Positions 14,481 through 25,942 of a DNA stretch of 25,942 nucleotides are shown in pieces (within the stretch, counting starts at the first letter, position 1; each line of letters begins with the position of its first letter). The translations under genes and the position numbers were made by a program. Location of the stretch: positions 1 through 25,942 of the forward strand of contig BAAFSQ010000138.1 of assembly GCA_054661495.1 (NCBI GenBank), written 5' to 3'. The stretch comes from Zygophlyctis sp. KS116. Lineage: Eukaryota > Fungi > Chytridiomycota. The notes under the pieces are model-generated. The model ran no database searches. It worked only from the letters and a program-made list of their open reading frames with translations, and had not been told where the DNA came from.

Positions 14481-17400
14481 TCATTCAACATCATAGTTAA
14501 GATTAGGGGCAAGCCATCTTTCAATTTCAGAAAGGGGCATCCCTTTACGATCACTATAGTCTTTAATTTGATCTTTTCCGACTTTTCCAACCGCGAAATA
14601 ACTAGATTCAGGATGAGCAAAATATAATCCAGATACGGATGCTGCAGGTAACATGGCTAAAGATTCAGTCAAAGAAATATTGGTAGACTTTTCAATATCC
14701 ATGAGATTCCAAAGTGTGAGTTTTTCAGTATGATCAGGTTGGGATGGATATCCAGGTGCAGGACGTATCCCTTGGTATTTTATTTGAATCATTTCAGAAG
14801 GAGACAGGTTTTCATCAGTCCCATAGCCCCAAAATTCTCTCCTTGTTCTTTCATGCATCAACTCTGCAAAAGCTTCAGTTAATCGATCAGCAAGAGCCTT
14901 CAGCATAATTATAGAAAAGTCATCATAAGTTTTCTCAAATTCAGCACATTTTTCATCTACTCCAAAACCGACAGAAACTGCAAATCCACCAATATAGTCT
15001 TTTAAACCAGATGTAGAAGGAGCGACAAAATCTGATAAACAGTAATACGATTCACTGGAATCAGAGTCCTGATATTCAATTGAACAAAAAATACCTTTTC
15101 AGCTTGCTGTCGAAGTCCATGGAATTTAGCGGTAGGATTAGATCTATCTTCGTCACTATATACTTGAATATCGTCCCCGACTGAATTCGCTGGATAAAAT
15201 CCGACAATACCAGTAGCTTTCAGTATCTTCTTCTCTATAATTGTCTTCAACATATTTTGAGCATCATTATACAATTTCTTGGCTTCTGGACCGATTTCAG
15301 CATCATTAAAAAGCTTGGGAAATCCACGATTAGGATACTTTCCACGGAGTTGCCACGTCTGGAAAAAAGGATTCCAATCAATATATGGTATTAAATCTGT
15401 TAAGCAGTAGTCATTAAAAATCTTGGTTCCAATAAATGAAGGCGCAGCAGCCGGCAAACTTTTGGTCCAATCGATAATAAATCGTTTATTGATCGCTTCC
15501 TGGTAGTCTAGATATCTTCTATCCTTGAGTCCTTCATAGTGTTCTGCCCTTAAATCTTCGTACTCATCAGCCACATCTTCAATGTAATCTTTCACTTATT
15601 TTATGATTAATTTACCTGGTCGAACATCATCATCCAGCAAGGAAGACACAACTACAACTGACCGAGAAGCGTCCAGGACATGAATTACTGGTTTTTCATA
15701 GCGCGGCGCTATCTTGACGGCCGTATGCATTTTGGATGTCGTAGCACCCCCAATCATCAACGGAATCTATTCTTAACAAAAATGTATTTACTTTTAAGTT
15801 TTTTCGCTCCATTTCTTTCGCAACGTAGACCATTTCATCCAAGGATGGAGTAATTAGTCCTGAAAGTCCCAAAACATCCGCCTTGTGTTCAATGCAAGCA
15901 TTGAGTATCTTATCACAAGGTACCATAACTCCTAAATCTACTACTTTATAATTGTTGCACCCCAAAACAACACCCACTATATTTTTTCCAATGTCATGGA
16001 CATCACCCTTCACAGTCGCCATAACTATCGTTCCATTATAAGATGCATTGGGATCATCATCTTCTAGCTGCAGCGACGCTAAGTTGGCAAGTCTCTCCTC
16101 CTCCATAAATGGGATCAAATGTGCCACAGCAGATTTCATCACACGAGCTGATTTGATAACTTGGGGCAAGAACATTTTCCCAGCCCCAAAAAGATCTCCA
16201 ACAATCTTCATTCCAGACATCAAAGGTCCTTCAATTACATTCAATGGTCTTGGATAGAGCTTAGTATTTGATCGAGCTTCTTCCGTGTCCTCTAAGATAT
16301 GTTTCGTGATTCCTTTAACCAATGCATGCATAAGACGTTTTTCGACAGGTTCATTTCTCCAAGCCTCTGCTTCTTCTTGATTCTTCACTCCATTATTTCC
16401 ATGAGATTCAGCGTATGCCAACAATTTTTCTGTAACTTCAGGATCACGATTCCATACTGCATCCTCACAAATTTGCAGAAGGTCTTTTGAGATATCATCA
16501 TATATAGTCAAATACCCCGCATTGACGATTCCCATATCCAATCCAGCCTTAATAGCATGGTAGAGAAAGACTGAGTGCATTGCCATTCGAATTACTTCTT
16601 TACCTCTGAATGAGAAAGACAGGTTAGACACTCCACCACTTATCCGAGCGCCCGGTAAATGTTTTTTAATCAGACGACAAGATTCGATAAATTCTACCGA
16701 ATAATTATTGTGCTCCTCTGTAATGTTAGATTGAATGTATCTATACCTAAACCGGTTGCTATTGTCAAAATATTTGGATCAAAGATGATATCACAAGGAC
16801 GAAAACGCACCTTTTCTGTAAGAATTTTGTAGGATCGGGCACATATTTCAAATTTCCGGTTCGCATCCACTGCTTGGCCTTCTTCATCAAACTGAGAATG
16901 TTATATTAAAGAATCTTACAGCCATGCAAATAACTGCTGCTCCAAAGCGCCGCACAATCGTGGCCTTCTTAATAAACTCCTCTTCACCCTCTTTAAGAGA
17001 TATTGAATTCACGATACACTTCCCTTGTGCACACTTGAGCCCAGCCAATATCACCTCAAAATTTGAAGAATCAACCATAATTGGAACTCTTGCGATATCT
17101 GGCTCGGATGCAATATAATTCATAAACTTCGTCATTGCGGCTTTACCATCCAATAGTCCTTCGTCCATATTGATATCAATCACCTGTGCTCCATTTTCGA
17201 CTTGAGCTCGGCCTATTGCTAATGCTTCTTCATACGCTCCATTTAGAATTTTTTTTGCAAATACTCTTGATCCTTTAATTGTTAAAGAGAATTTAAAGTA
17301 CCAGAGACATTACACCTCTCCCCAATATTCACAAACCCTGTTGTAGTATCCATTTTAAGATTTTCTAGCCCGGCTACAATTAGAACATAAGGATCAAACG

Positions 17401-18431
17401 CAGGAATTTTTCTTGGGGCATATTTTGAACACATTTTTACAAGTGCCCGAATGTGATCAGGAGTGGTTCCACAACATCCACCTAGAATATTTAATAATCC
17501 TAAAGATGCAAACTTTTCTACTTGAGCAGCCATTTGTTCTGGCAGTTGATCATATTCACCAAAAGTATTTGGAAGTCCAGCATTAGGATAACATATAGTG
17601 TAACATGGACTATGCTTTGAAATATTTTGCATAAACGGAAGCATTTGATCTGCCCCAAGAGCACAATTTAGTCCTAATGCCAATGGCCTAGAATGAACAA
17701 CAGAAGTCACAAAAGCTTCACCAGTTTGTCCAGAGAGTGTTCTACCAGACTGATCCACTATTGTACCAGAAATTAAAATCGGACAAACTGGATAACCATC
17801 TTCTTCAAAAACCAAATCAATAGCGTATAATGCTGCTTTGGCATTTAATGTATCAAATATTGTTTCAACCAGTAATAAATCAACACCTCCATCCAACAAT
17901 CCACGAATCTGTTCTCTGTAAGCCTCAACCATAATGTCAAAAGTAGTATTTCTAAATGAAGGATTTTCCACTGATGGAGAAATAGAGAGTGTTTGATTCG
18001 TTGGACCTATTGCACCTGCAACATATCTCGGTTTATCGGGCGTTTTTTCAGTATATAACTTGCACGCCTTTTTAGCTATTTCAGCTGATACCTACAATAT
18101 TGTTAATTGTATATAGTACCTTGTTAATTTCATATACGATATCTTGCATTAAATAATCAGCTTGTGCGATTGTTGTCCCAGAAAATGTATTTGTCTCAAT
18201 GATATCCGATCCGGCTTCTAAATATTCGCAATGAATTCCAAATATAACATCTGGTCTGGTCAAACTCAATAAATCATTATTTCCTTTTAGAAAGTCTTTT
18301 GGATGATCTTTAAAACGATCGCCCCGGAAATCTGATTCGGTGAGTTTATGCTTTTGGATCATAGTCCCCATAGCGCCGTCAAGGAACATGATCCTCCGAG
18401 CCAATTCATCTTTTAGTTGCATAATCGTCAT
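14481..18431 (-). CDS. metH: Cobalamin-dependent methionine synthase (MetH/MTR), ~1252 aa, 7 introns
   Basis: Hcy-binding LDGAMGT and GGCCGTTP, pterin domain [11 protein letters not shown]12 motif GDVHDIGKN and LSGLITPS, activation domain [14 protein letters not shown]. Introns 18092-18119, 17273-17301, 16892-16919, 16718-16746, 15767-15791, 15589-15615 and 15069-15094 give one open frame. Confidence 0.97.
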
Positions 18432-20046: not shown

Positions 20047-20129
20047 TTTTTTCAACTGAGCAAAGCAAATTTTCGGACTAGCAGCACATGAAACTAGGAA
20101 ATTTTGAGTGTTTCATCTGGAAATGTATC

Positions 20130-20168
20130 AAAATTTAATTGGTGCGTATTTCATATAAAAAAAATTTC
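20130..20168. repeat. Left end: candidate TSD AAAATTTA (20130-20137) and subterminal inverted repeat (20147-20168)
   Basis: TATTTCATATAAAAAAAATTTC matches the reverse complement of 24738-24759 (TATTTCATATAAAAAAATTTTC) at 21 of 22 positions. Confidence 0.7.
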
Positions 20169-20334
20169 ATGTTCTAAAAATTTCACGTTCTGAGTTCAAT
20201 TCCCGAAAAAATTAAAACCTTTCAACTTAAACTTTCAAGTTTCGGAATATTCACTTTAACTTGATTGGTCAAAATGTAGCATTACGTCATTTATAAGATA
20301 TGAAAAGGGATTTTGGGGGCGCGTTTTCTTTAAA

Positions 20335-22095
20335 ATGATGTCTGTAGATCCGCAAACACCTCAAAGAAGAGTATCATCTTCCGAAACGTATACGTATATT
20401 TCTAAATAATAGACCATCAAGAAAACGCTTCAAATCGGAAATGGAAGAAGGTGTCAATCAAAGGTATAGTTTTTTATTTTAATTGTTAGAGTTGCTGATT
20501 GTTTGGCTATAGCGCCGCCTGTCTCTGAATTATGTGGACAGAGGACATGCGCACTCCTTGATGCAATAGGTACAAATAATTAATTTAATAATATAGGTAG
20601 TTCTTTGGGGGTAGACCCCATCGCGATCTTAACGATTTTATTGCCTGTTATATCATTTTTAATGGGATCTAACTGTTTCATTACGGCTGATGATAGTCTA
20701 AACTGGAAGGAGCCGATAATTCTTTTTTCTCTTTTAGTGGGTCGAAAAGGGACGCGCAAATCTCCTATTCTTAAAACAATATATGAGCCACTTCGTCAAA
20801 TGTTGCGTTGCCATCAGACGGATAATGTTGATTATATTTTCCTTGATGGAACTTTAGAAGGAATGACAACTCAATTGATGATTAATGACGGAGAAATGCT
20901 GCAGATTACGAATGAGGCAGAACATTATCTAAACAAATTATATTCATTAAAAGGTTACTATCATAATTATTAATAATAGATGATAATAAATTTAGAAGTA
21001 TGTATCTTAACTTTCATGGGGGTGGTCAGTTCAAATTTGTTACCAAAACTCAGGGAGCCACAGAAATAGAAAATGTTGCCCTTAATTTTATTGGTTGTAT
21101 ACATCCGAAAACAATTATAAGTTTTCTTAACCGTAATGAACAAAATCATGACGGTCTTCTAGAAAGGTGATTAATAGAAACAATTCATATTATAGATTTT
21201 TGATTTCAACATTTAACGTGGAGTTTTCAACTATGGAAGACATGCGTAAAAATTTTTTTGATTCTTCAATTTTAAAAGGTAACGAACACACTTAATTATA
21301 GATATTTTTGGTAGAATCTGGGAACAACATCATAAAGAAGAAGAAAAACAGAAAATAATTTATTCAACGGATAATGTTGGTCAATTAAAATTTGATCAGA
21401 TTTTTAATTCTATTTCGATCTTAAGAAGAAATTCAAATAATGAAGACCTCCACGCAGAGTACGGCAAACTTCCTGGAATGGTTCTTCGGATAGCTGGAGT
21501 CTTAAATATTTTGGAAAATGTAATTCTATTGATTAAAAAAATAGGCGTTAGAAAACAAAGGGTTTTCCTCATTTATTACTGCTGATACCATTGAAATGGC
21601 ATACAATGTAGCCAATTATTATTTGACGCAGCGGTAGCATTTATTATTTCAATTTTTAGTGTAATCTTGAAAAATGGTAAGTTTGAAAACGATTTCTGTG
21701 TAATCATGGACAGAAGTTTAGAAGAAGTCGTCATTTGTCCCACGAACTCAGAAATATTCAATGTGAAACGTGTTCTATACTGTTCCGGAAGATCTTTGAG
21801 TAATTCAGATATCGTCAGGGCAAAAAGGATTGACACATCTGAAATTGAAAGAACTTTGGATTTGATTGATTTAGCCGGATTTGGGAAAGTCGCTAAATCA
21901 ACCAGCTTAAGTAACAGAAATAGAGGGGTATTTTCTAGCATTAACCAATAGGAACCGATATTAAAATTGGAAAAGTTTTCTTCTTCACAAATTCTTTCCA
22001 CCGGAATCGGCAGAGCCCGATTTCGACTGTTTCGATTGGAAATATCAGCACTGGATAATTCTATCACGGGAGTGGACGAAGATCTATTTATTTAA
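20335..22095 (+). CDS. DUF3987/YfjI-like (MCM-related) AAA+ ATPase with probable C-terminal winged helix, ~509 aa, 9 introns
   Basis: Introns 20388-20412, 20464-20489, 20570-20596, 20954-20979, 21167-21195, 21279-21301, 21520-21544, 21634-21659 and 21928-21951 give one open frame. Motifs: W.EP..LF.LLVGRKGTRKSP (Walker A), T.EG, ITNE (Walker B variant), FIGCIHP, DGLLERF (Arg finger), GKLPGMVLRIAGVL and ITADTIEMA..V..YY..Q. Confidence 0.8.
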
Positions 22096-22148
22096 AAAAA
22101 ATTTGAAGACTTGAATCTCTGAGATGTCCTAAGCCACTCAAGTTTTTT

Positions 22149-24461
22149 ATGCTATGTGTTAAATGTCAAACATTTTATTCTTTTGCAGAATTTCTGAATT
22201 TTAAAACAGGGAAGTTGAATAAAACTTGTAGCATTTGTTTAGGAACCAAACATGCACAAATAGGGAAAATAGTAATCTTGGACAACTTTTCTGACATAGA
22301 TTTTCAGGACTTATTTCCAGAAGCCATCGTAATTATCTCAGATTCTCAAGACTTTGAATATATTGATTTAAAGGAGCTTTTTAATGATTTGAATAATGAA
22401 TGCTTTGAAAAAACTGGATATAAATTTAGGATAACTCAAATTACTGAAAATCACATTTATTCAAAATGCAGATACTCTGATAAAATTCAGGCGACAGAAG
22501 TCACAGACAGAAAGAGAAAGAACTTCGGCAAAGAAAAATTTAACTGCTGTGGAATTCTTTACATCCATAGAAATTTAAATTATTTCTCAATTTTTTTCAA
22601 ACATATTATAGCCCATCAGGAGTACTTGGATGTATGTGTAAATGGTGAAATCCTAGATGAAATAAAGGAAAAGGCGCGATTGATGACCCCTTCTCAGATT
22701 TATAAGCAGCTTTTATCAGCTAATCATGATAATGAAAAGATGAGAAATATCACTATATCTCAGATTAGGTAGGTTTTGGAAATTCTAACAAAAGAAATAT
22801 TTGGAAAAAAGAAAATAGCTACTTAGATGAAACTGTAGAAGCTCTTATAGGAAAATCAAATTATCTCAAATCAATTGAAATTTTTGAAGGTATCTTTAAT
22901 CGATGAGAATTTAGATTTCTTCAGTTTTTATACGCCTTTCATAAATCACAAAAATTACTCAAATTACTGCATATTGGATTCGACCTTTAAAACAAATCAA
23001 GAAGGATTGGAATTATTTGTTTTGATTTTTTTATATGATGGAGAGGGCTATCCCTCTAGTTATTTATTTTTGGGACGGAAAGCTCCGGCTGGTCAAAGAC
23101 AGCAAAAGATTTCAAGATGGTAGTATTATCAAGGTTAATATAATAGGCTGGACTCTATAAAAAAAATGGGTGTATATCCAGTTTTTGTCAAAATGGATAA
23201 GGATGTTGGTCAGATCAAAGCCACTCAGAATACCTGGCCAAATGCCACCATTAGTCTGTGTCTATGGCATATTCTCAGAGCTATTAAAAACAGATTGGAA
23301 ACTGTGAAATCACCCCGACAAGTAATTTTACAAGCGTAAGATTGAAATTAATCTTAATTACAGAGAGGATATTGATATTGAAATTCAAATGGATGTCAGA
23401 AAAAAGACATCAGAAAATGTCAATCAAAGACTCCCGTCCAAAAATGATATTTCAGAGATTTTATGTATTGTAAAAATGGCATGCCTGGAGCATCAGAAGA
23501 TACCAACAAGCTCAGGAGATTATCTTGAAAAAGCTATGATCCGTAACAAATACTTGAAAAAAATGATTCTATTCTGCTTGGAAAAAAATATTTATGACAC
23601 ATTAGCGTATCTTTATTACGAGTGGTTTTCTAAAGATCAGTTTTTTCTCTGGGCTAGATCAAGCAACGAAACTTTTGTCTGTAGATACCGGACGTCTATG
23701 TTCGCCGAAAGTCATTTCAGGTGAGCTTTTTTTGTAACATATATAGAATTTTAAAAAGGGACTTTTTCAATTCTTTTGGGCGCCCAAATTTAATAATGTG
23801 CCTCACGATTATTGATAAGTGGCTTTTGCCAGCATTTAATCAAAAATTATTGCAAACATTATCCAAGAGAAGAGAACCTAATTGGTTCAAAGACTTTTTA
23901 AATGAATGGAGCAATCTTCTTAGTCATGATTTGATATCTAAAGAGACATACACCGATATTTCCAAATGGGTGTGTAGCTGTGAACATTTCAAAATCTCAT
24001 GTTTCTATTTATGTCAGCATTTAATCAGTAAAAGTCAACAAGCACCGAAATTTAGATCTCAAATAAGAATTCAAGACATATATCCGTTTCTTGTTTTTCA
24101 GAATGGTACAGAAGATGTAGTTGTGCCTAATATACCAGCTGAATCATTTATACTTACGTCGAATATACCTACAGAATCTAATTTACCAGCTGAATCATTT
24201 ATACCCGATACGAATATACCTACAGAATCCAATGAAACCTGTGATAAAGAGGGGTCAGAAACTTATAACAAAATCATCAACTTAATTCAATTTCTAGGGA
24301 AGGAAGCTAATCAACATCAGTTTAATATTCAACAATTGAATGTCATCGAAAAAAATCTTAAGAATGCATTCAAATACAAGGAAGATATTGAAGTATTTAC
24401 TAAAGCTAAACAAATTCCGAGGACCTGGAAGGATTTAAACGAAAATACTATGTATTGCTAA
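22149..24461 (+). CDS. MULE (Mutator/IS256-superfamily) DDE transposase with SWIM zinc finger, ~726 aa, 5 introns
   Basis: Introns 22769-22794, 22890-22914, 23120-23146, 23336-23363 and 23721-23746 give one open frame. N-terminal CxxC..CxxC and WRKY/FAR1-like C..C..H.H motifs. Catalytic LDSTFKTN, MDKD, CLWH (CxxH) and TSMFAESHFRILK. SWIM WVCSC...CQHL. Confidence 0.9.
24129..24230 (+). repeat. 51-bp (17-aa) duplication in the transposase C-terminal linker
   Basis: NIPAESFILTSNIPTES / NLPAESFIPDTNIPTES. Confidence 0.8.
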
Positions 24462-24584
24462 AGAATATAGAAAATTCATAAAAATAATCTGTTGAGTCAA
24501 TCCGTAGTATATACCAATGTTAAGCAGCGCGTCCGCATGAGCGGGCGTAAGATGTCCGAGAGTTAAAGAATTTTTTTTTTATTG

Positions 24585-24658
24585 TCCGAAAGTTGATAGT
24601 TGAAGAATGAATATTGAAAGTTGATAGTTGAAGATTGAAAATTAAAAGTTGAAGATTG
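24585..24658. repeat. Right subterminal repeat cluster (GAAAGTTGATAGTTGAAGA x2 plus a partial copy)
   Basis: The 19-mer occurs at 24588-24606 and 24616-24634, with a partial copy at 24644-24658. Inverted counterparts lie at the left end (20219-20246). Confidence 0.75.
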
Positions 24659-24737
24659 CAATCAAAAAGATAAGTTTATAATCTAGTGATAATATTGCAG
24701 TTTATTAAATATAATGCTATAAGCAAGTTTTACTTAG

Positions 24738-24776
24738 GAAAATTTTTTTATATGAAATAGAGGGGTTTAAAATTTA
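24738..24776. repeat. Right end: subterminal inverted repeat (24738-24759) and candidate TSD AAAATTTA (24769-24776)
   Basis: Mirror image of the left-end arrangement with identical 9-nt spacing. Confidence 0.7.
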
Positions 24777-25016: not shown

Positions 25017-25942
25017 ATGACAATCGAGTAATTTATGATTTTTAAATAATCAGCGATAATCCTCTTAGGCTTAAATCTCCCAAAATATCCAATGCATCGG
25101 AACTAGGACCTCCACTATCGGCTCCAGGTCCAATTTCTTCTCAAGTCTTTGTTCCGCCTCCGCCAAATACCAGCGCTTATCTGACTAGAAAGAAGAAAAA
25201 GGTTAATCCAACGACTACATTCTTTTCTCCACCTTCACAGAGTGATGCTTATGCTGGAAATTTACAGGAATATAGTCACTTATCGAAAAATGACAAGTAA
25301 GACTGACTATTTTAATTTTATTTATAGACAAAGAAATAGTTTGACTTCTCCAGAAATGTTTAATAGATCAAACCAGGGCTCTCCACTGATCGGTATTGAT
25401 TCAGAAGTCAATCCTCCAATTCAGAAATTTTCAGATAATCAACAGTCTTTTGACCAGGAAGCCAATGATCTTTACGGGATGGATGAGCAGTCTGGTTTAG
25501 ACGAGGTTGATCGCGCACAAGATGGATATGATCTGCAACAAGGACGGCCAACTTACGAAATGGATCTTCCGACTGATGCCTATGATGAGCAGCTAGAGTA
25601 TGAAGATCAACGTGGCCAGCAATCTTATGGTATGGGCGATCAATATTACCCTCTGGATCAGCAGACTTATGGTGCCCCGAATGATCGGTATGATTTACAG
25701 GAACAGCAATTGTATGGGGCAGGTGGTCAGTATAATCAAGAAGAACAGCCAATCTATGGTGTTAATGACCAATATAATAATCTAGAAGGTCGGCCGGCAT
25801 ATGATGGCAATGATCAATATAATCAAGAAGAACAGCCAATCTATGGTGGTAATGACCAATATAATAATCTAGAAGGTCGGCCGGCATATGATGGCAATGA
25901 TCAATATAATCAAGAAGAACAGCCAATCTATGGTGGTAATGA
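25017..25942 (+). CDS. 5' part of a disordered Pro-rich then Tyr/Gln/Asp-repeat protein (runs off the window; alternative in-frame ATG at 24975)
   Basis: Introns 25028-25053 and 25297-25327 give an open frame (MTIDDNPLRLKSPK...FSPPSQ...YNQEEQPIYG...) to the window end. It is absent from the ORF track because it has no stop in the window. Confidence 0.7.
25731..25942 (+). repeat. 87-bp (29-aa) tandem coding repeat YNQEEQPIYG(V/G)NDQYNNLEGRPAYDGNDQ
   Basis: Near-identical units start at 25731, 25818 and 25905. Confidence 0.92.

Follow-up and report, generated by a model that had tools for sequence, protein, structure and literature searches.

A Mutator-like element of Zygophlyctis sp. KS116 that pairs its transposase with a predicted DUF3987/MCM-like ATPase

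Mutator-like elements (MULEs) of the MuDR type, such as maize MuDR (mudrA/mudrB), Mutyl (mutB) and VANDAL (vanB/vanC), encode a DDE transposase with a CxxH motif and a SWIM zinc finger next to an accessory open reading frame, and their inverted repeats are 14-500 bp long or absent (PMC6446971). Their target-site duplications (TSDs) measure 8-11 bp. These features are shared by the element that is the subject of this study and that resides in contig C138 of the 12.7-Mb Zygophlyctis sp. KS116 assembly (GCA_054661495.1), of which the whole stretch of 25,942 nt was analysed and is referred to as the window; its short inverted repeats fall within the range of MULEs and the TSDs of its family are 8-9 bp long. 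It differs from the described MULEs in that its accessory gene encodes a predicted MCM-like ATPase and in that the outermost 7-9 nt differ between its ends. The words helicase and ATPase are absent from the text of the MULE survey (PMC6446971).

Helicase-encoding eukaryotic DDE transposons are already known, but with RecQ helicases. AcademH and KolobokH, which were also found in fungi, possess a dedicated helicase gene or domain of the RecQ/superfamily 2 (SF2) type (PMC9587614, PMC10799480, PMC10045372), whereas the protein described here would be a superfamily 6 (SF6) AAA+ ring protein encoded beside a MULE transposase. DUF3987 has been assigned to SF6 and is related to MCM (PMC4889955). One member, a bacterial PriCT-DUF3987 protein, forms oligomers and acts as a 5'-3' helicase together with a primase-polymerase (PMC11724360). 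DUF3987 helicases from phages and from mobile elements of bacteria (AgaPH, N4 dns, Corndog) have in common with our protein the family match and the motif order, and an MCM-like fold is predicted for a full-length relative; in contrast to them, the gene studied here is eukaryotic and spliced, has no primase/PriCT partner, shows NE in its Walker B motif and stands beside a DDE transposase gene. Circular intermediates and an asymmetric use of the ends characterise the transposition of prokaryotic Mutator-like elements. TnGBS and IS256 belong to the same transposase superfamily and have 8-9-bp repeats, and TnGBS pairs its transposase with a replication protein and couples it to circular intermediates (PMC3942029, a text in which the words helicase and ATPase are likewise absent). 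TnGBS differs from our element in its use of a plasmid-like replicase and conjugation. Finally, MuB, TnsC and IstB are also AAA+ ATPases encoded beside a DDE transposase; however, they are prokaryotic, belong to a different AAA+ clade and would be expected to co-evolve with the transposase, which is not seen in this element.

In the literature searched, with Repbase and Dfam outside the comparison, no description of a MULE or KDZ transposase paired with a DUF3987 ATPase was found, nor anything that links MCM or an ATPase to KDZ, Zisupton or MuDR; the DUF3987 literature, judged by title and abstract, deals with phages or bacteria only. The element belongs to the MULE superfamily, and its accessory enzyme is apparently undescribed. 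New are the empty site and the alternative insertions, the incongruence of the gene trees, the Walker B change, the link to animal KDZ transposases and the evidence against a pairing with Cryptons.

Anatomy and recent mobility of the element

The intact MULE spans 4,631 bp (window 20138-24768) and is flanked on both sides by AAAATTTA (Table 1). In Logan contigs from runs X2, X3 and X4, three metagenomes that belong to three studies, position 20129 is joined to position 24769 and one AAAATTTA is kept, the eight letters of which fit either side of the joint. Moreover, in run X4 a near-identical element sits elsewhere between the two copies of a 9-bp duplication, runs X3 and X5 show further flanks around the element ends, and near-identical ends are present elsewhere in the genome (C576, C363, C380). 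Perfect 9-bp TSDs also border the divergent full-length copies C513, C431 and L076, the latter from a Joint Genome Institute (JGI) sample. Because the empty site exists in three metagenomes and a near-identical element with its own 9-bp TSD is found elsewhere, the element moved recently and its insertion is polymorphic at present; an assembly artefact is ruled out by the independent metagenome contigs. Anatomy and mobility taken jointly leave next to no doubt that this 4.6-kb element is an autonomous, recently mobile two-gene MULE. The single-copy empty site and the extra copies with different TSDs (C513, C431, L076, X4), which the original prediction had put forward as checks, were thus both found, and the empty site, together with near-identical ends that have other flanks, confirms the proposed 8-bp TSD as well as both ends. 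For the element family, 9-bp TSDs are usual. A host gene for an amino-acid permease has its start codon about 85 bp downstream of the insertion, and DNA of the source assembly recurs in freshwater and estuary metagenomes. Two pattern searches with consensus ends added little.

The matched inverted repeats that had been proposed are present as a 22-bp repeat, whereas the outermost 9 nt of the ends are unmatched. Among the copies the repeat is 22-31 bp long, it starts 7-9 nt inside the mismatched termini and the mismatch follows a fixed pattern with AT at the left and AAACCC(C/T) at the right end (four of four full copies for both); since this asymmetry occurs in every full copy, it is a family trait and not the result of decay. 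Subterminal direct repeats of the GAAAGTTGA type are probably binding sites of the transposase. A structured replication origin in the GC-rich segment at the 3' side was considered and rejected, as folding z-scores range from +1.4 to -2.5 and the motif varies among subfamilies.

Profile and database searches were done exon by exon, and joined gene models were used only in local frame checks, trees and the ratio of nonsynonymous to synonymous substitutions (dN/dS); the alignments were anchored on the exons of the window and some of their rows are partial. By this approach the transposase exons matched MULE (PF10551, 6e-5), a ZSWIM RNaseH-like domain and, weakly, SWIM, and the Atlas look-alikes of the transposase are mostly fungal hypothetical proteins. 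The complete MULE D-D-CxxH-E set is present as predicted, and 9-11 copies retain D260, D324, CLWH, E485 and the SWIM cysteines. The number of nine introns given for the element in the original prediction is true of gene 1 (all GT-AG, 23-29 nt each); gene 2 adds five, so that the total is 14. All 14 are deduced from open frames and from positions common to divergent copies, the introns lying at the same codons in copies that are only about 60% identical. C138, C513 and C598 have an intron after the catalytic glutamate that C484, C431 and L076 lack, a distribution that agrees with the transposase tree. The last transposase exon contains two 51-bp tandem copies (window 24127-24228) in a low-complexity stretch rich in P, E, S and T.

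Table 1. Features of the element in the window and of related animal loci
Feature	Position	Strand	Remarks
Left TSD AAAATTTA, 8 bp	20130..20137	.	sequence; single-copy empty site in runs X2, X3, X4
Left terminus ATTGGTGCG, mismatched to right terminus	20138..20146	+	AT start in 4/4 full copies
Left arm, 22-bp subterminal inverted repeat, 95% complementary	20147..20168	+	
Gene 1, predicted DUF3987/MCM-like AAA+ ATPase, 509 aa, 10 exons	20335..22095	+	ATG 20335, TAA 22095, spliced frame open
Gene 1 introns 1-5	20388-20412, 20464-20489, 20570-20596, 20954-20979, 21167-21195	+	GT-AG
Gene 1 introns 6-9	21279-21301, 21520-21544, 21634-21659, 21928-21951	+	GT-AG
Walker A GRKGTRKS (K116)	20740..20763	+	GxKGxxK(S/T) kept across copies
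Walker B MLQITNE, D-to-N (N167, E168)	20896..20916	+	alignment of copies
Sensor-1 position GCIHP	21093..21107	+	H; Q in bacterial and animal relatives
Arg finger DGLLERF, R243 split by intron 5	21150..21199	+	kept across copies
Lid/sensor-2 motif KLPGMVLR	21466..21489	+	K..G..LR kept across copies
Gene 2, MULE transposase, 726 aa, 6 exons	22149..24461	+	ATG 22149, spliced frame open
Gene 2 introns (5, 25-28 nt)	22769-22794, 22890-22914, 23120-23146, 23336-23363, 23721-23746	+	
Catalytic residues	D260 at 22977, D324 at 23196, CxxH 23259-23270, E485 at 23707	+	
SWIM zinc finger CxC...CxH	23973..24020	+	Pfam weak, E 0.079; conserved in most copies; Atlas look-alikes with SWIM
Short GC-rich hairpin	24530..24547	+	common to C128, C693, C149, L076; folding not beyond shuffles
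Subterminal GAAAGTTGA-type direct repeats	24588..24643	+	reverse mirror near left end, about 20215-20245
Right arm, subterminal inverted repeat	24738..24759	-	
Right terminus, AAACCCCTC read from outside	24760..24768	-	AAACCC(C/T) in 4/4 full copies
Right TSD AAAATTTA	24769..24776	.	sequence and empty site
KDZ-linked loci	L067 (Clytia), L069, L070, L071, L072, L073, L077		L077 by 35% identity to Clytia KDZ
Clytia hemisphaerica unit, 5.6 kb, both genes	L067:7710-13280, GCA_902728285.1		38-bp inverted repeat

The ATPase gene and its association with the transposase gene

Gene 1 ends 53 bp upstream of gene 2 on the same strand, and both spliced models are open, in agreement with the two intact co-oriented genes of the original prediction. 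Three exons of gene 1 match DUF3987 (PF13148) in the order of the profile (E 2e-6, 3e-4 and 2.5e-4); exon 4 is above the cut-off, other copies reach 38.7 bits and the Atlas score is 0.96. The anticipated matches to PF13148 and to PF10551 plus SWIM were therefore obtained exon by exon, SWIM being weak. The assignment is extended by a full-length homologue from Clytia, which is linked to gene 1 by HHalign (99.3%) and for which the fold is predicted with a predicted local distance difference test score (pLDDT) of 86.5, the top matches in the PDB all being MCM subunits. A sequence search of the PDB with the ATPase profile returned no match. Exons 9-10, which were inspected for a C-terminal winged helix, are conserved among copies but were without a significant match to any profile. 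The Walker A motif GRKGTRKS, the DGLLERF motif and K..G..LR.A..L, all named beforehand, are present and conserved across copies. The Walker B motif reads hhhhNE and not hhhhDE in 13 of 13 rows of alignment A1 and is altered only in two degraded copies. The sensor-1 position likewise has H in place of Q in the whole fungal family; neither change was mentioned in the original prediction. Because of the D-to-N change, a canonical active helicase is claimed with less confidence, whereas family ancestry is unaffected.

The genome contains about 20 places that match ATPase exon 4 and 12 that match transposase exon 4. In ten copies (C138, C513, C598, C128, C431, C484, C339, C379, C1016, C131) the transposase N-terminus is immediately preceded by the ATPase, and the full copy L076 from another sample has the same order; C693 stops at a contig edge, while C298 and a second fragment on C131 are without the link between ATPase and transposase. 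Since the ATPase has about 20 matches in the genome and is absent from the empty site, it is not a single-copy host gene, and together with the ten transposase copies that carry it this supports the proposal of a MULE lineage in eukaryotes that possesses a DUF3987/MCM-like ATPase of its own. Among the six copies with both genes, the ATPases are 36-68% and the transposases 35-63% identical. Divergent ATPase copies show nonsynonymous differences (pN) of 0.22-0.34 compared to saturated synonymous differences (pS) of 0.7-0.85, and dN/dS in the closest informative pairs is 0.16, 0.25 and 0.33, and 0.5 against the degraded copy C339. The ATPase has thus long belonged to the element family and is maintained by purifying selection. 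The long residence in eukaryotic genomes that had been proposed is likewise supported by the saturated synonymous divergence and the shared intron positions.

Congruence of the two gene trees, which the original prediction had listed as a check, was not observed. In C513 the ATPase groups with C431 and the transposase with C598, and each gene's topology is rejected on the alignment of the other with p below 1e-50 in both directions in the approximately unbiased (AU) test. Strict co-inheritance of the two genes is ruled out by this incongruence. Although the architecture is stable, its halves have been exchanged between subfamilies by recombination. A reshuffling of mudrA and mudrB by recombination is known for maize Mu (PMC10401008).

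The incongruence would also be compatible with the ATPase being a passenger, i.e., a Pack-MULE-like capture or a separate mobile gene inside MULEs. The ATPase copy C403 has no MULE left end and lies beside a Crypton, and other MULE families of the genome do not match the ATPase exons in the stretches examined, which fits this explanation as well. However, position and orientation are fixed in ten copies with saturated synonymous sites, the gene is under purifying selection with intact motifs, no host-type single-copy orthologue was found, and the ATPase is not part of other Crypton copies, the starts of which lie about 300 bp beyond the ATPase stop. Furthermore, a capture of the Pack-MULE type is not borne out, as the transposase is intact, the ATPase is full-length and no host source gene was found. 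The passenger explanation is therefore largely refuted and very improbable.

Several other loci were noted. C89, C349, C900 and C149:17297 encode further MULE transposases, which have longer open frames and show no match to the exons of this element family, and no ATPase match was found near the first three in the stretches examined. At C149:17500-24200 (L039), two transposase remnants are arranged tail to tail with fused right subterminal regions and without terminal repeats. At C403:1500-7688 (L053), the ATPase copy follows a C431-like right subterminal sequence and precedes the Crypton (NDC10_II, GCR1_C); the locus resembles a rearranged MULE fragment next to a separate Crypton. A pairing of ATPase and Crypton is not supported because of the start of the other Crypton copies and because the C403 ATPase is closest to the ATPase of a full MULE copy.

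Possible functions of the ATPase

The reading that we prefer, with a probability of roughly 0.45, is that the ATPase acts as a DNA motor, the ring of which would unwind or resolve a transposition intermediate and favor a replicative outcome with host polymerases. Insertion by the DDE transposase produces an 8-9-bp TSD, and the gene 1 ATPase would assemble as an MCM-like ring on the element DNA to aid transposition. After an asymmetric first cut by the transposase, the ATPase would unwind the element, upon which host polymerases would copy it out or a branched intermediate would be resolved, similar to what happens in prokaryotic Mutator-family elements that form circles. As the element is without primase or polymerase, any synthesis would be that of the host; an adjacent or fused primase (archaeo-eukaryotic primase, AEP, or DnaG) is not present in the element, which holds two genes only. 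The conservation of the Walker A lysine, the catalytic glutamate, the Arg finger and sensor 2 supports the motor function. Further arguments for it are the MCM-like fold of the full-length homologue, the helicase activity of the bacterial PriCT-DUF3987 protein, the circles and asymmetric end use of prokaryotic Mutator-like elements, the replicase of TnGBS, the unequal ends of all full copies and the presence of this ATPase family next to animal KDZ transposases.

Several observations weigh against it. Hydrolysis by the gene 1 protein may be slow or absent because of the Walker B NE and the histidine at sensor 1. Moreover, the N-terminal region of the protein is short and has no primase partner, and the direct fold model of the fungal fragment is of low confidence and uninformative. 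The empty sites are unmodified pre-insertion alleles and as such uninformative on a copy or a cut mode. No activity, expression or circle junction was seen, and the element is contained in no RNA run among those searched. To our knowledge, most MULEs transpose without any ATPase.

The same active-site changes, i.e., the near-invariant Walker B D-to-N and the sensor-1 Q-to-H exchange, would fit slow hydrolysis if the ATPase served as an ATP-dependent switch or formed a filament, either to capture target DNA or to activate and remodel the transpososome, similarly to MuB, TnsC and IstB. Bacterial DDE systems use AAA+ partners in this way, and gene 1 is very close to the transposase gene. However, MuB, TnsC and IstB lie outside the MCM clade, the animal relatives keep the canonical DE and adjoin an unrelated transposase, and such partners usually co-evolve with the transposase, yet the two trees are strongly incongruent; the free exchange of the halves argues against a tight protein pair. 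Such a switch is therefore doubtful, though it comes next after the motor.

The free exchange of the halves would fit a function independent of the transposase, for which an action on the host might be considered, such as anti-silencing, chromatin remodelling at the element ends or the steering of donor-site repair, similar to VANC or TET/JBP. Accessory genes that cross transposon superfamilies often act in anti-silencing, and TET/JBP was found in 11 lineages (PMC12730594). However, the sole characterised DUF3987 protein is a replicative-type helicase, and Pfam searches by exon revealed no chromatin-reader domain in any exon, making a host-directed role improbable.

Animal relatives, surroundings of the element and meaning

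Among 1.84 billion representative proteins, the close relatives of the ATPase are metagenomic exon fragments only, followed by bacterial DUF3987 proteins and an animal-type family. A scan of viral contigs gave no relative and a scan of metagenomes one short contig. A close fragment of the fungal-type ATPase (P0089, NCBI MEN9446334.1) is filed under a Bacteroidota metagenome-assembled genome on a 3.7-kb contig, which is probably a mis-binned eukaryotic contig.

In seven of nine animal-type DUF3987 loci inspected, a KDZ transposase gene lies within about 6 kb, and none was found beside L043 and L068; L070 and L071 come from one sample and a named host is available for L067 only. The KDZ-linked loci carry CxC5 where scanned, and the neighbouring ATPase has a canonical Walker B (DE). 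The unit of Clytia hemisphaerica, located inside an intron of a UBR gene, has a candidate 8-bp TSD (GAAAACTT), mismatched outer bases and GC-rich tandem repeats of 86 bp; inverted repeats also surround L069-L072. The DUF3987 ATPase family thus appears to accompany another transposon superfamily, KDZ, in animals, which would point to a generic service in transposition. As to whether the ATPases of the fungus and of animals arose once, the best trees do not join them (p-AU 0.05, the break in L077 being read as X).

In the surroundings of the element, a spliced gene on the minus strand (window 14481-18431), named from its translation only, encodes a cobalamin-dependent methionine synthase, an enzyme typical of early-diverging fungi and not of Dikarya. 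At window 25600-25942, an 87-bp coding tandem repeat rich in Q, Y, N and G runs off the contig end. Short telomere-like CCCTAA/TTAGGG repeats were found at L015:1564, L024:5039 and L032:4325. As the repeat in L015 is placed exactly at the truncation point of a right-end fragment, this suggests that breaks were healed with telomeric sequence.

The questions of how eukaryotic cut-and-paste transposons such as Mutator gain copy number and which roles their accessory genes play are old and open, and for MURB we know of no enzymatic activity. Here, the accessory gene belongs to a defined enzyme family, its motifs can be tested, and the 4.6-kb element on which it lies is compact, intact and polymorphic, which turns the question of accessory roles into a two-protein experiment. 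Moreover, the link to animal KDZ transposases would explain many unannotated animal DUF3987 genes as transposon cargo. Tentatively, and with doubt prevailing, at least two eukaryotic DDE superfamilies, i.e., MULE as described here and KDZ/Kyakuja-like elements in cnidarians and other marine animals, might have recruited a phage-type MCM-like helicase for copy-out transposition. If true, copy-out MULE and KDZ elements would define an unrecognised mechanistic class of eukaryotic DNA transposons.

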